Counted from the stretch's first letter, positions 10,322-22,300 are shown. The stretch is 26,267 nt of DNA from Salpingoeca rosetta (GCA_033442325.1 JAWQFM010000035.1:721884-748150); one strand, 5' to 3'. The notes: a model not told the origin generated them from the sequence alone. Translations and numbers: made by a program.

Positions 10322-13300
10322 ATGATGGCCATCGCCATCGTGTTCCCTCTCATCGGCCTCCTCGCCTTGGCCCACGCAGAGAGGTGTGTGAGGAATATGT
10401 GCGCATGTGCGATGTGTGTTTGTGTTTGTGTGTGTGTGTGTGTGTGTGTGTGTGTGTGTGCGATGTGTGTGTTGTGTTGTGTGTGTGTGTGTGTGTGTGT
10501 GTGTGTGTGCCTGCCAGCGTTTCATTATAGCATTATGTCTCTGTCTGGTGGTGCTGCTGCATGTGGGTGCTTCGTTCTTCTTGCGGGCGAAGCTGATGGC
10601 GTGGCTGAATCGAGGGACTGCGTTGTCACTCCTCGTCGTGTTTTGGGTTTCATTACCTGACGGTGTGTGCTGTGCGTTGTTCGCAGTCATGTGCTCCCCG
10701 CTCGATTTCGCCGCGACGTAAGTGCCCTGCTGCATCGCTGGCGTGTCACACAAGCACGTTTTGCTGTGAATCGTGCACGCATGAATTTAGACACGCTGCT
10801 CACGCACCACTTACACACTGCTGATCAATTGTTTGTGTCCATCCACAACACACCTGGCTTTGCCAACGCATTGGCATGCTTGGGCTTCATTTTGGGTGTT
10901 GACATTAGGTCCCGTCTGCTCCGCCGAGAAACCCGACGACCACGCCCACACCTGGTGGCGCGTTTGCCGTTTCGTGGGAGGCCCCTGACCCCGGCACGAC
11001 CAACGGCGCCATCGCCGGCTACGTGATCCGCATACGCTCCACGGCTCCGCAGCCCCCGACGTGGGCCTACGGCAACGCCATCCTCGACGCCACGGACGTG
11101 GAGGTGTCCTCGAGCACCTTCTCCTACACCCTGGCCGACGAGCTCTCGTTCCCGTTCTCTGGCTACGATGTCGGCGTCGCCGTCAAGAACGCCGAGGGCT
11201 TTGGCCCCTTTGCCATGCTCTCCGTCGACCCGCCAAACAGTATCCCCTCCGGCCAGCCGCGCTCCGTGTCCACGTCCCTCCCACCTGTGGACGCGATGAC
11301 TTACCCGCCAGACGCAGACGAGATCATCGTGCAGTGGACCGTGCCTGCAGGCATCTGGTTCCGCAACGCGCCCGCCATCGGCTTTGACCTCGTGGCCACA
11401 CCCGTGCCGGGCAGCACCACGAACGAAGTGGTGACCGTCCGCTTCCCCAAGCAGTGGCAGGACGGTGACTCGCCCGACGAGCAGCTCACGGCCTCCATCA
11501 CGGGCCTCACCCCAAATACGGAGTACGTCGTGCTCGTGTACACGATTGGGCTGGACGGCGACCGCAGCACCGCTTCCTTCATGACCACGGACAAAACGCG
11601 CCCACACCTGCCCACGGTGGCACCGGCGGGCCTCAGCGTGGACGACACCTCTGCCACCGCCTTCAACCTCTCCTGGGACGCAATGAGTGCCAGCACACCG
11701 GGCAGCAACGGCGACATTGTTGGCTACCGCATCTACCACGTGCCCACGGCTGATCGCGGCTGCACCAACCTGGCCTGCCCACCGCCATCTCCCTGCCAGG
11801 AGGACCCGCGCTGCGAGTTTGGCGTGTGCACGTACACCAACAAGCCCGACAACATCACGTGCGATGATGGTAACGCCCACACCGTTCGTGACCACTGCGT
11901 TGCCGGCACATGTGTTGGCGACCTCGTCAACCAGCACATCGATCAGCAGCCTGTGCACCGCCACATTCACATGAACGTAAGATTTTTTGTGTGCGTGTAT
12001 GTGTGTCTGTGTGTGTGTGTGTGTGTGCCTGTGTGTGTGTGTGTGTGTGTGTGTGTGTGTGTGTGTGTGTGTGTCTGTGTGTGTCTGTGTCTGTGTCTGT
12101 GTGTGCGCGTGCGTGTATGTGCGGGTGCGTGCGTGCGTGCGTGTGTTGTTCGGCGGTTGGATGTTCCGCATTTCTGCTTTCATGTTGATTTTCGCGCCCT
12201 TATCTTGTTGCGCACTTGTGGTAACAGACGCGCAGCCATGGCGGAGGATACATGCCTCGACTCGGCGAGTTTTGGTGAGGACGGATGCAACGGCTGGGGG
12301 TAGGGTGGAGTCGAGTTTTGGTCGCTTGCATGTCGGTTTCGCTCTCACTCACCCACACTTGCACGCACACGATTGCACGCACACGTCCATGCATACTGTC
12401 CCGCACACACACACACACGCACACGCGCGCGCACACGCACACACACACACACACACACACACACACACACACACACACACACACACACACACACACACAC
12501 ACACACGTACGTACGTACNNNNNNNNNNNNNNNNNNNNNNNNNNNNNNNNNNNNNNNNNNNNNNNNNNNNNNNNNNNNNNNNNNNNNNNNNNNNNNNNNN
12601 NNNNNNNNNNNNNNNNNNCTATTGGAGTGGCGCCAGCATCTACCGATATGCGCAGGATGGTACATACAAGACGGCGTTCACGGCCGCGGGATCAACGAAC
12701 AATATGATGCAGCTGTGGGGCGAGCCCGACTCGTTGTACTACTACACGGCCAACTGGGGCAGTCAGTACTGCAGGAAGCTTGGCCCTTATCCCAGCAGCA
12801 GCGTCGTGTGGACGTACACCCCGTTCCCTGCCACCACCGTCGGCGGCATCGCAACAGACAGCAACTACGCCTACTGCATCCAGAATGGGCAAGCGACAGT
12901 TCACGTGTTGGACAAGATGACCGGCTCGCTCGTCCGCACGTTTGACCTGACTGGCGGCAGCATCGGCACGCTCCATGGCGCCTTTGCAGTTGTCAACGAC
13001 AAGATCTACTACGGCACGGGACAGTACTTCTACCGCCACAACCTGGCGGACGGCAAACATGATGGCTTCAGGTGTGTGTGTGTGTGTGTGTGTGTGTGTG
13101 TGTGTGTGTGTGTGCGGGTGCGTGTATGGGGTTGTACGCGAGCGTTTGAACGTGCGTGTGCGTTTGCATCAGCCCTAATGTCATCAAGCTGATGCAATGA
13201 CACTCACATGCTGTCGCCTATCCTTCCACTTGTTCTCAGGTTCCAAACCATTCAGACCATCAACAACATGGCGTTCACGGGCCAAGACTTGTGCATCAGC

Positions 13301-19300: not shown

Positions 19301-22300
19301 CGTGCACCACCTTGAACATACGCTCACGAGTCGATGCTTCCCATGGTGTCAACCGATGCCCTGCAATACTTCTTCCGCCTCCCCTTGCCACAGCAACTTT
19401 GGGCGTACAACTTTGGCACGACCGTTGGCGGTGTGTCGCTGCACGATGGTGTCGTGTATGCCATGCAGAGCGGCAGCTACAACATCCGCGTCCTCGACTG
19501 GGAGACGGGCCAACTCCAGCGCTCTTTCTCGTCAGTGCATTCGGAGGCACTTCCTCTGTGTACCTGCTCCGTGTGTGTGTGTGTGTGTGTGTGTGTGTGT
19601 GTGTGTCTGCGTGTGAGTGTGGTGTGTACCTGCTCCGTGTGTGTGTGTGTGTGGTGTGTGTGTGTATGTGTGTGTGAGTGTAGTTGTGCTGAAGTTAGAC
19701 CTACTTGCCGTGGTCGCTGTGGTCTCACGAACGCCACTCTTCCTTGCACGCCCTGCTCCCCCCTCACACCACGAACAGGCTGAGCGGCTCGCCTCAAGGG
19801 TTCTCGAACATCTACGGCACATTTGCAGTCGTGAGCAACAAGATCTTCGTCGGCGACTACAACGACAACGACATGTACCGGTGAGCGTGATGGCTCTTGT
19901 GTTGCTGTTGTGTGGTCATGTTAGTGAACTGTGCTTCTGCTGTGTAACGATGCGCCTGCATACATGCACACGCACTCAAGCAAACACACGCTCATACGCG
20001 CGCACACACAATTCACACACACGCGCGTTTGCCTTGCCACTGTGCCGTTTAGATTTGATCTTCAAACGTATCAGTACGACAACGTGCATTGGACGGCCTC
20101 GTACCAGACACAAAAGCTTGGCTTTGACGGCCAGCATCTCTGCATCGCTTCAGGGGATCCTGTCGAATGCTGGAGAAGTGAGTCGCCGCGCTCTCGCTTG
20201 TTTGTCTTCATTTTCTGTCGCATGGCTCTGGCCACGAGTTACATCTGCATCTGTGTCATGCTTGTCTCTGTGCTATCTCCGATACATGCCCTCATCCCTT
20301 TAACTCATCATCACTTCAACCCCTCGGCCAACGCCACCCCCGTCTTGTTCACCGCACGTGATCACCGCAGTTGTGGACGAGAATGTGTACGGCGACCGCA
20401 CCGTCATCTCTGCCAATGCGCCGGCACAGGCCATCATGGGCTCCGAGATCCTGACAAAGGACATGAACCTGGCCATCTCCAAGGAGGTGTCGCCCAACAG
20501 CGATTCGAGCTTCAAGCTCTGCTTCCGCGCATCAGACCACGGCTTCTCCGGCTCCACCTTCCACGCACGCTGCGACAACAAGGGCCAGACGGTTGTCGTT
20601 GTCCGTTCGACAGAGGGCAGCCCGCAGGGACCGCGCGTATTTGGCGCCTTTGCTCCCAACAGCTGGCGCTCCGACACGTCCACGTATCTCCGTGCCGATG
20701 ATGCCTTCCTCTTCCGCTTTGTCAACAACGGCCAATTCGAGCGCACAGATCTCCTCAACTATCCGGAGTACGCCCAGTACACGCGCCCAGACTACTGCCC
20801 TGAGTTCGGTGCGTTGTCGTCGTGTTTGTGTTTGTGCATGTATCTTGTGTTGGTGTTGATGGGCTCGGTGCTCTGGCCTTCGTTGCTGGCGTGCGCAAGT
20901 CCGTTTGCACACACACATGCACTCACACACACACTCACACACACACACACACTCTCATTGACGCACATGTAGGTAACTCTGATTTCCGCATGTCAACCGA
21001 CTGTCGGTCTGGATACACCAGCACGAATGCTTACACGTGAGTCAAACCCATGCATGTGTGCTTTGGCTTCCAGCGTCGTGTTGGTTACAATACATCTGCA
21101 AGCAACGATGCTGTCGTTTCCTCATACTCATCGCCATCCATGCTGTTGCGTGTATCCGTGCTATTGCTGAGCACAGTGTGCACCAGAGCAGCAGCACGTA
21201 CAACAACGAGTGGTTGACTGGCTCCTACAACAGCTGGCAAGTGGACGACGTCGAGGTCTTCTACCGCGTCGACGAATCCGCAGATCCATGCTTCGACGTG
21301 GTGCGTACAGCAGCGCTCCCGTGCAGATGGCACGTAATTGTGAGTGGATGTGGGGTTGCGTTTGGTCAAAACTACCAGTGTCTCGAATCCCTTCGTGGCA
21401 ATCTCATCCTCGTGTGTTGTGTTTGGTCCAAACGACACAGACATGTGATCCACCAATGGGTCAGTGCAAACTGCCCGGTCGCTGCGTCAGCGGCGAGTGC
21501 GTCTATGATGTCGCCCCGAATGGCACCCCATGCAACGACGGTCAGTATTGCGAAGTGTGTGGGGGGGGGGGGATCTATGCGTTTGAGAGCATCGAGTCAC
21601 CATTGCGCGCCTCCTCGTTCCTCACCAACAAACACACAAACGTGCCACTCCCCTTCGAACAACGCACCCTTTGCAGGCGACGATGCGACGGTGTTTGACA
21701 CGTGCCAGGACACCGTCTGCGTTGGCCGCCATCCCGTCATCACGGAGGACAACCAGCACACGTTCACTGGCCTCGACCCGTACACCACCTACGCCTTCCG
21801 TGTGGCTGCCCGCACCGTCCGCGGTCAGGGCCCGGCCTCTGACGCCGTGCGCGCTCGCACCCTCTCCGGCACCCCAACAGGTTGGCGCTTGTGCGTGTGT
21901 GTCGTGTGTGTGTGTGTGTGTCGTGTGTGTGTGTGTGTGTGTGTGTGTGTGTGTGTGTGTGTGTGTGTGTGTGTGTGTGTGTGTGTGTGTGTGTCCGTGA
22001 AGTTGTAACTTAGATGTCCTTGTCCTTTGGGCATGCTTGCTTGTACTCAGCTTCACTCACACAGGGCCCTCACTCGCTTACAACCCCCCTCCCCTTTCTT
22101 TCCCTCCTCAACCCTTCAGGTCCACCCCAGGATGTGGTGGCGCGAGCGGCAGCAACGACCGTGTTGCACATCACGTGGAAGCAGCCGCTGTTTGGCGAGC
22201 GCCACGGCACCATCTCATCGTACAAGCTGTGGGTGCAGCACCTGAACAGCATGCGCCAACCAGCGGGCACACCCTGGACCATCGTCACGGGCAACGACCT

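Follow-up and report, generated by a model that had tools for sequence, protein, structure and literature searches.

Two FN3 domains as probable hosts of a folded multi-domain cassette in a surface protein family of Salpingoeca rosetta

Introduction

Domain insertion is found in 20% of multidomain proteins according to one survey (PMC13114784). In the insulin receptor family, an extracellular FN3 domain is split into FnIII-2a and FnIII-2b by the insert domain (PMC2577065, PMC10618199), which has ~120 residues, did not crystallise, is presumed to be disordered and holds the alpha/beta cleavage site (PMC2577065). A split FN3 (FN3N/C) is also described in HCFC1, or HCF-1 (bioRxiv 10.64898/2025.12.28.696747). 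Here we analysed a stretch of 26,267 nucleotides from the choanoflagellate Salpingoeca rosetta (contig C35:721884-748150 of a 55.4-Mb assembly in 68 contigs; GCA_033442325.1 JAWQFM010000035.1), the whole of which is called the window below, and its plus-strand gene PTSG_13098, which is annotated as a partial "hypothetical protein" and whose product is P0008 of our profile search (1949 amino acids, aa). Two FN3 domains of this protein, #3 and #6, are very probably true hosts of domain insertion, in which the separated halves form one FN3 and a propeller/TLDc head projects sideways to give a branched ectodomain.

In the insulin receptor the C-C' loop is the site of the insert, as it is in PTSG_13098, and both are cases of a type I receptor with an extracellular FN3 domain whose halves are far apart in sequence. 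The inserts themselves are different: those of the PTSG_13098 type have 546–763 residues and four or five predicted folded domains, and no R-x-[KR]-R site was found in any cassette of P0008, P0156, P0001, P0046 and P0074. The two marks of an insulin-receptor-type insert, a non-globular nature and a furin-type site, are thus not those of the cassette. For HCF-1, an interdigitated Fn3 was reportedly presented by Park et al. in 2012. The intervening region of HCF-1 is mostly non-globular and proteolytically cut, and its halves are on different chains; as in PTSG_13098, one FN3 fold is made from two segments far apart in sequence, but HCF-1 is nuclear and has neither Cys-rich adaptors nor folded cargo. 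In integrin beta (beta-I in hybrid, hybrid in PSI) and in RrgA-type Gram-positive pilus tip adhesins, a ligand-binding domain sits in a loop of a beta-sandwich stalk and the head stands off the rod, whereas the host folds are other ones, the insert is a single VWA-type domain and no sequence relationship to PTSG_13098 is known. No description of the present architecture was found in literature searches, whether by locus tag or for FN3 domains that are split, interrupted or nested; these returned only the insulin receptor and HCFC1. A preliminary description of the window, made from its DNA alone, had regarded the architecture as undescribed; this applies to the folded multi-domain insert in FN3, of which the searches gave no description, and not to the split FN3 as such, which is already known.

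Results

Two complementary halves are predicted to make one FN3

On the Pfam fn3 profile (84 positions) the halves are complementary, FN3 #3 covering positions 2–35 and 48–83 and FN3 #6 positions 2–38 and 48–82. The N-half of FN3 #3 (..NGDIVGYRIYHVP, 11617–11745) is followed at a distance by a C-half that opens with SNTSSYTLDDLHPG.. (16498–16626), and the C-half of FN3 #6 opens with RHPVITEDNQHTFTGL.. (21727–21870, in exon 21677–21880). Cassette 2, between the halves of FN3 #6, has 546 aa, and cassette 1 has ~750 aa, as taken from the 752–763 aa of orthologous and paralogous copies. All sequences quoted in the preliminary description are found on the plus strand at the positions it gave, and the splitting of both domains, which it had read from them, is confirmed by the complementary Pfam halves and by in-frame junctions. 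The 5' two-thirds of PTSG_13098 are within the window and are arranged as follows (all on the + strand; the evidence is given in brackets, ORF standing for open reading frame):

10295..10381, +, exon 1 with start codon and signal-peptide-like N-terminus MSLHAPITKMMAIAIVFPLIGLLALAHAE (P0008 mapping onto the window; hydrophobic N-terminus read directly)
10718..11616, +, FN3 #1 and FN3 #2, intact (Pfam fn3 2.1e-16 for the 10909-11955 ORF; census label FF for P0008)
11617..11745, +, FN3 #3 N-half, strands A-B-C, ending ..GYRIYHVP (Pfam fn3 profile 2-35 of 84, 19.1 bits)
11746..11925, +, Cys-rich repeat 1N, 8 Cys, 5-residue linker after FN3 strand C (ORF 10909-12300 unbroken; aligns with all other flanking repeats)
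12228..13333, +, propeller unit 1a, exons, with assembly gap 12519-12618 in an intron (P0008 mapping; paralog on contig C31 spans the gap region; 16 genome matches to the unit)
13925..15160, +, propeller unit 1b, exons (P0008 mapping; Pfam PQQ_2 29.3 bits at P0008 aa 692-782)
15220..16253, +, TLDc domain 1, exons (Pfam TLD 1.3e-12 on exon 15076-15459; 2 TLD stretches in P0008)
16254..16395, +, Cys-rich repeat 1C, final 11 codons under gap 16396-16495 (ORF read directly; four paralogs in frame, ..VAGQCVGAARY, into the FN3 C-half)
16498..16626, +, FN3 #3 C-half, strands C'-E-F-G (Pfam fn3 profile 48-83 of 84, 44.3 bits; joined with the N-half 71.9 bits)
16627..17511, +, FN3 #4 and FN3 #5, intact, with introns 16744-16907 and 17213-17342 (Pfam fn3)
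17512..17753, +, FN3 #6 N-half, exons 17512-17568 and 17687-17753, ending ..EYSIYYTP (Pfam fn3 profile 2-38, 16.9 bits; RNA joint 17749>17919 to the Cys-rich exon)
17923..18458, +, Cys-rich repeat 2N, exons 17923-18008, 18137-18201 and the start of 18419-18607 (RNA joints; ORF of the spliced model; repeat alignment)
18474..20176, +, propeller 2, six exons, best match to five-bladed propellers (AlphaFold2 model residues 116-336; VIA structure comparison)
20418..21276, +, TLDc domain 2 (Pfam TLD at P0008 aa 1588-1759; VIA comparison to OXR2 TLDc 4acj)
21277..21726, +, Cys-rich repeat 2C, end of exon 21177-21300, exons 21441-21540 and 21677-21726 (RNA joints 21299>21440 and 21539>21676; repeat alignment)
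21727..21870, +, FN3 #6 C-half, in an exon shared with the end of Cys-rich repeat 2C (Pfam fn3 profile 48-82, 33.7 bits; joined halves 76.6 bits; model and VIA alignment)
21871..22348, +, FN3 #7, exons to 21880 and 22120-22348, the gene then being cut by gap 22563-22662 (RNA joint 21877>22117)

To score the joined halves, an FN3 hidden Markov model (HMM) of 110 positions was built from 600 intact domains of other hit proteins. With this HMM, the joined halves gave one hit over positions 10–103 of 110, with 71.9 bits for FN3 #3 and 76.6 bits for FN3 #6; the intact neighbours gave 82–84 bits and three joined pairs from Microstomoeca roanoka 58–84 bits. The halves scored singly gave 29 bits (positions 10–51) and 44–45 bits (positions 65–104). 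When their order was reversed, two separate partial hits appeared, and neither a shuffled partner nor the real flanking 45 residues brought any gain in score. The cassette is flanked by HMM positions 51/52 and 64/65, i.e. it lies between strand C and strand C', which is the C-C' loop named in the preliminary description. Since the joined length of 86–89 aa is the full length of an FN3, nothing is missing from the joined domain. Moreover, an unguided MAFFT alignment split 70/70 intact FN3 domains across the 546-aa cassette.

Structure prediction was carried out for the split FN3 #6 and its cassette. AlphaFold2 with alignment A5, which consists of cassette homologs and 70 intact FN3 rows, gave a mean pLDDT of 86.0, with 77–96 in the N-half, 88–94 in the C-half and 72–97 over nearly the whole length of the cassette. 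In this model, strands A, B and C are formed by residues 11–46, and strands C', E, F and G by residues 596–636. When the model was compared with 48,161 solved chains using VIA, single solved FN3 domains were superposed on model range 2..640 over 86–99 residues with a root-mean-square deviation (rmsd) of 1.0–1.4 Å and Z 14–16, for example, 6tpu_B (Z 15.8, 1.2 Å, 94 residues), 4n68_A (Z 15.0, 1.3 Å, 90/99 residues) and 3f7q_A (Z 14.6, 1.0 Å, 86 residues). Because the ~90 aligned residues exceed one 45-residue half, both halves are placed in one canonical sandwich in the model. The proposal that the joined halves would behave as one FN3 was thus upheld both by the HMM and by the superposition of the predicted model. 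Measured as a member of the FN3 family, the domain covers the full HMM as two complementary pieces, shows the seven-strand beta-sandwich in a predicted model whose alignment is not fully independent, and is not contiguous in sequence, with 546 or ~750 aa between C and C'. The discontinuous sequence leaves the membership in the FN3 fold unaffected, and one FN3 rebuilt from both halves is predicted.

In the hit set, 17 other FN3 domains carry inserts of 45–216 residues at or near the same HMM position (N-half end 52–62, C-half start 58–69), which suggests that the C-C' site is permissive. Their carriers are mostly unnamed proteins, one being RPTP-like and from Nematostella. These inserts differ from the cassette, since they are mostly low-complexity, although several contain a few Cys, and have neither 8-Cys repeats nor a recognisable folded domain.

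The junctions and the transcript

Three of the four junctions between FN3 halves and cassettes are intronless, with no stop and no frame change. Junction 1, from strand C of FN3 #3 into the Cys-rich repeat (TADRGC..CVAGTCVGDL), is inside a single open exon (ORF 10909–12300); junction 2, from Cys-rich repeat 1C into the C-half of FN3 #3, is in frame in four paralogs; and junction 4, from Cys-rich repeat 2C into the C-half of FN3 #6, is inside exon 21677–21880. Junction 3, from the N-half of FN3 #6 into the Cys-rich repeat, is formed by a GT..AG intron, for which there are 8 reads (7 starts) as well as contigs of two other studies. In general, the introns in the window are short, of the GT..AG type and rich in (GT)n/(CA)n repeats.

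The RNA evidence consists of two stranded raw runs (X21 and X22) and contigs of two older runs placed on 16496–22495. In X21 and X22 the first mates are nearly all on the minus strand, which is expected for plus-strand RNA in most stranded libraries. Fourteen of the 15 RNA joints listed are GT..AG and the 15th is so after allowing a one-base difference; intron 17213–17342 is one of these joints. For introns 16744–16907 and 17569–17686 the position comes from a search for GT..AG motifs and agrees with contig pieces or a loose end. The spliced model has 18 exons, 17 introns (15 RNA-supported) and an ORF of 954 aa with 0 stops, which spans the FN3 #3 C-half, FN3 #4, FN3 #5, the FN3 #6 N-half, the Cys-rich/propeller/TLDc/Cys-rich cassette (..CQDTVCVGRHPV), the FN3 #6 C-half and FN3 #7, and which shows no difference from the annotated P0008 in cassette 2. 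The transcript is continuous and the junctions are in frame. Neither missed exons that complete one of the halves nor a break-up of the region into several transcripts, both of which the preliminary description had named as findings that would speak against it, were seen in the RNA-seq data.

An N gap at the end of cassette 1, mentioned in the same description as a caveat, does exist (16396–16495). The paralogs on contigs C31, C14, C30 and C34 all keep one frame across it, with exactly 33 nt between the flanks (..FDACVAGQCVGAARY followed directly by SNTSSYTLDDLHPG.., the C-half starting SNTSSYTL), and therefore the gap hides 11 exon codons. Gap 12519–12618 follows a (CA)n run. At this place the gap-free C31 paralog has a phase-2 intron (..RLGEFW before it and YPSWSGSSVYRY.. 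after it), from which it follows that the gap hides the remainder of an intron, its acceptor and the first 2–3 codons of the next exon. The public PTSG_13098 model is mis-spliced at both gaps (12272–12629 and 16307–16561, e.g. ..CTPTNV joined to QAYTSIGG..); it drops ..WYPSWS.. of propeller 1a as well as the end of Cys-rich repeat 1C and strands C' and E of FN3 #3.

The gene starts at 10295 with the signal-peptide-like first exon, and its 3' end is cut by the third N gap (22563–22662), where homology to the C31 paralog also ends. Downstream of it, where the window was examined to 26267, positions 22563–26267 have no likeness to those exons of the C31 paralog that would come next, i.e. those for the other FN3, the TNFR-like region, the transmembrane helix and the tail, so that the scaffold join or the size of this gap is doubtful. 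After the signal peptide there is an RFRR site of the furin/kexin type (window 10685–10720; P0008 aa 36–39), and the paralogs have RVRR or RNRR there, which suggests a putative N-terminal propeptide.

Occurrence at other loci and in other species

The order N-half, Cys-rich repeat, cargo, Cys-rich repeat, C-half was found in every full-length copy examined. In S. rosetta the cassette is present at at least 7 loci, including PTSG_09826, PTSG_06573, PTSG_09376 and loci on contigs C14, C30 and C34. Writing F for an intact FN3, n for an N-half, K for a Cys-rich repeat and c for a C-half, PTSG_09826, with the same architecture as PTSG_13098, reads FFnKKcFFnKKcFFFFF and PTSG_06573 reads FFnKKcFF, while in PTSG_09376 FnKKc is followed by GPS and 7tm_2, i.e. 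it is an adhesion G-protein-coupled receptor (GPCR). The nesting is also present in Microstomoeca roanoka: P0001, a complete transcript-derived ORF of 4500 aa, has three nested cassettes (F..FnKKcFFFnKKcFFnKKcFFF), two of them positionally matching those of PTSG_13098. The nesting is thus conserved in a second genus as well as among the S. rosetta loci. Moreover, metagenome fragments (P0111, P0147 and the 24-member cluster of P0054) read ..TLDc-K-c-F. Weaker cases, with other cargo, come from Salpingoeca kvevrii, where two FN3 (25 and 49 bits when their halves are joined) have an unassigned insert of 268–269 aa together with a single Cys repeat, and from metagenomic P0090, in which an FN3 has a Cys-CUB-Cys insert (joined halves 36 bits; CUB 2e-8). 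A homolog search with the cassettes of P0008, P0074 and P0001, limited to a length window, returned no further choanoflagellate species, only S. rosetta paralogs and bacterial or metagenomic relatives of the cargo.

The full-length relatives have a signal peptide and 13 or more FN3; then come a TNFR-like region rich in Cys, a stretch rich in Thr and a transmembrane helix, and the protein ends in a short tail. An NPxY motif is conserved in the cytoplasmic tail, as ISNPAYML in S. rosetta (C31 paralog; 22302–22817 of the concatenated L035+L025+L031, ~L031:6302–6817) and as ITNPVYMM at the C-terminus of M. roanoka P0001. The annotated PTSG_09826 model ends before the transmembrane and tail exons.

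Two further loci, L039:2730–9872 (-) and L041:3007–9600 (-), were considered as nested examples and dropped, as FN3 and all other Pfam domains are absent from both. Lying on contigs C34 and C2, they are intronless ORFs of 2380 and 2197 aa with the same propeller unit (three genome-search matches in one ORF and one in the other, 34–38% identity).

Domains of the cassette

Propeller and TLDc folds are predicted for the cargo. In the A5 model, propeller 2 (residues 116–336) gave its best VIA matches with glutaminyl cyclase 3mbr (Z 20.8, 210 residues, 2.8 Å), YjiK 3qqz (Z 20.0) and olfactomedin 5amo (Z 17.4, 232 residues, 3.3 Å), the identity to 3mbr and 5amo being 12–13%. All three are what we take to be five-bladed propellers. 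NHL propellers, which are presumably six-bladed, scored slightly lower (Z 15.9–16.6). Hence a five-bladed propeller of ~220 residues is the best match for the predicted fold, with NHL scores close by. Pfam gave no match to an olfactomedin or cyclase family and only a borderline PQQ_2 (29.3 bits versus a cut-off of 27.6), and NCBIfam gave nothing.

The TLDc family (PF07534) is matched in 2 stretches, with 145 bits for the whole protein versus a cut-off of 24.5. In the model, TLDc 2 (residues 350–534) was superposed on the OXR2 TLDc 4acj with Z 20.2 and an rmsd of 2.2 Å over 159/167 residues, and its other neighbours include the V1-bound TLDc proteins 7uzk, 7une and 7fde. From their position between the signal peptide and the transmembrane helix, both TLDc domains (15220–16253 and 20418–21276) are predicted to be extracellular. 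In metagenomic P0181 and P0182, TLDc is paired with PAN/Apple domains, which is another extracellular context.

The flanking Cys-rich repeats are homologous to each other, with ~50 aa and 8 conserved Cys, and are connected to the FN3 strands by linkers of 5–9 residues on the N side and 2–6 residues on the C side. A curated family for this repeat was found neither in Pfam, where DUF7107 alone appeared at a non-significant E of 0.4–0.6, nor in NCBIfam. The 8-Cys repeat also occurs in 20–78 tandem copies in giant proteins from metagenomic and other sources (P0007, P0063, P0019, P0059 and others). Such tandem arrays would fit a rigid spacer role.

Discussion

Taken together, we propose that the PTSG_13098 family would be type I membrane proteins with an FN3 rod that carries two or three lateral heads. 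After strand C, the chain would exit the sandwich via a linker of 5–9 residues, pass through an 8-Cys repeat, one or two beta-propellers, TLDc and a second 8-Cys repeat, and re-enter 2–6 residues before strand C', where the halves would form one seven-strand FN3. A single loop has to receive the cassette at both of its ends, and for this reason the propeller/TLDc head would stand sideways on the two Cys-rich repeats, as on a disulfide-rich double stalk. The out-and-back stalk of the preliminary description agrees with this topology, in which the ends are held at one loop by linkers of 2–9 residues; that the two repeats also pack against each other is an additional assumption. The heads are probably the ligand-binding parts, for prey, matrix or neighbouring cells, and the NPxY tail would couple binding to endocytic uptake or cytoskeletal adaptors.

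Several observations weigh against this proposal. AlphaFold2 with a 9-row alignment (A2) gave a mean pLDDT of 59.9 and only 31–48 in the FN3 N-half, and the FN3 pairing in the A5 model was partly guided, since intact FN3 rows had been added. ESMFold2, run without alignment on the halves of FN3 #6 (46 aa and 53 aa) as separate chains, supported the pairing only weakly: the ipSAE was 0.47 versus 0.11 for the best of 3 controls, in a benchmark whose mark was reached by 51/78 solved complexes and 2/108 mismatched pairs, and scores <=0.60 were obtained by only 5/78 solved complexes and include all 4 passing mismatches (of 180). The runs agreed in >=97% of contacts and the partner pLDDT was >=74. 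In addition, the RNA reads are not uniquely assignable and many have paralog-type differences; PTSG_13098 and PTSG_09826 are 99% identical over cassette 2, and therefore share reads. The reads cover 16496–22495, so that read support is confined to cassette 2 and the FN3 domains beside it. The contact between the Cys-rich repeats, the side-by-side geometry of the stalk and the direction of the head are what we infer from topology. Furthermore, TLDc domains such as those of Oxr1, NCOA7 and mEAK7 are cytosolic partners of the V1 sector of V-ATPase.

An artefact of gene model or assembly, with the other FN3 halves in missed exons or gaps, or with the cassette as a separate gene in an intron, is extremely improbable. 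It draws on the two N gaps inside cassette 1, the visible mis-splicing of the annotated PTSG_13098 at both of them, and the near-identical paralogs, which could collapse in the assembly; however, three of the four junctions are inside single exons with neither stop nor frame change, the 15 RNA-supported joints and the two motif-placed introns yield a single 954-aa ORF, the joined halves have full FN3 length, and the same order recurs in gap-free paralogs and, three times, in the independent M. roanoka transcript ORF. It is also very unlikely that the cassette is optional, being skipped by alternative splicing in the major isoform so that the nested form is minor or conditional. None of the 15 joints listed skips the cassette, and there is one further RNA joint beyond these, which such an isoform could claim. 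The introns after 17687–17753 and before 21677–21880 are both of phase 1, and skipping would stay in frame; but the C-side boundary is in the middle of an exon, and skipping would leave 16 Cys-rich residues in the loop. Cassette 1 could not be removed cleanly, as both of its junctions are in exons, and the M. roanoka transcript keeps all three cassettes.

The halves might instead fail to re-form an FN3 within one chain, and be relics packed on the Cys-rich repeats or partners in a swapped dimer or polymer. The low confidence of the N-half in the first AlphaFold2 run and the weak pass of the ESMFold2 pairing are in line with this. HCF-1 halves on separate chains can associate, and the data fit in-chain and swapped pairing alike. 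On the other hand, the FN3 core pattern is as well preserved in the halves as in the intact neighbours, the halves are conserved across paralogs and genera, and the A5 model has high confidence and fits solved FN3 at ~1.2 Å; we consider this explanation very improbable, and one FN3 formed by both halves within the chain is preferred. Exon shuffling was dropped as an origin of the nesting for lack of support, since only one of the four junctions has an intron.

In contrast to the usual beads-on-a-string reading, this is a conserved and transcribed family with a predicted side branch of four or five domains on an FN3 rod. Such nesting is beyond what a linear annotation of domain architecture can express, and it is partly broken in the annotated gene model. 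The C-C' loop appears to accept very large folded inserts, a property of use in the engineering of FN3 (monobody-type) domains and in understanding partial fn3 hits in proteomes. In choanoflagellates, which are the closest living relatives of animals, the cell surface is predicted to carry TLDc together with an olfactomedin-like propeller, in one paralog on an adhesion GPCR, and the family offers concrete candidates for the recognition of prey, matrix or cell contacts.

Tentatively, the pair of 8-Cys repeats might be a general plug-in adaptor that mounts arbitrary folded cargo sideways on FN3 rods, at the C-C' loop, in choanoflagellates and environmental relatives, the propeller/TLDc cargo having been taken from bacterial giant surface proteins; we regard this as possible and rather doubtful. 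The cargo types are propeller/TLDc in S. rosetta and M. roanoka, CUB in P0090 and an unassigned ~270-aa domain in P0021 of S. kvevrii. If it is true, a modular system for building branched receptors would have arisen before or beside animal origins. Units 27–34% identical to the propeller/TLDc cargo occur in the HYR protein P0186 of Oceanihabitans (Flavobacteriaceae) and in the metagenomic proteins P0183–P0185 of 5–6 thousand aa, and share the signature ..RSHGGGY.P..NE.W.P.W... Unlike those of PTSG_13098, these units form tandem arrays in proteins without fn3 by Pfam, and hence they are not nested in FN3. Module transfer between bacteria and choanoflagellates is possible from this resemblance, and the link to bacterial surface proteins provides a testable case of interkingdom module transfer. 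P0183 also contains MopE-type Cys motifs and SUEL lectin domains.

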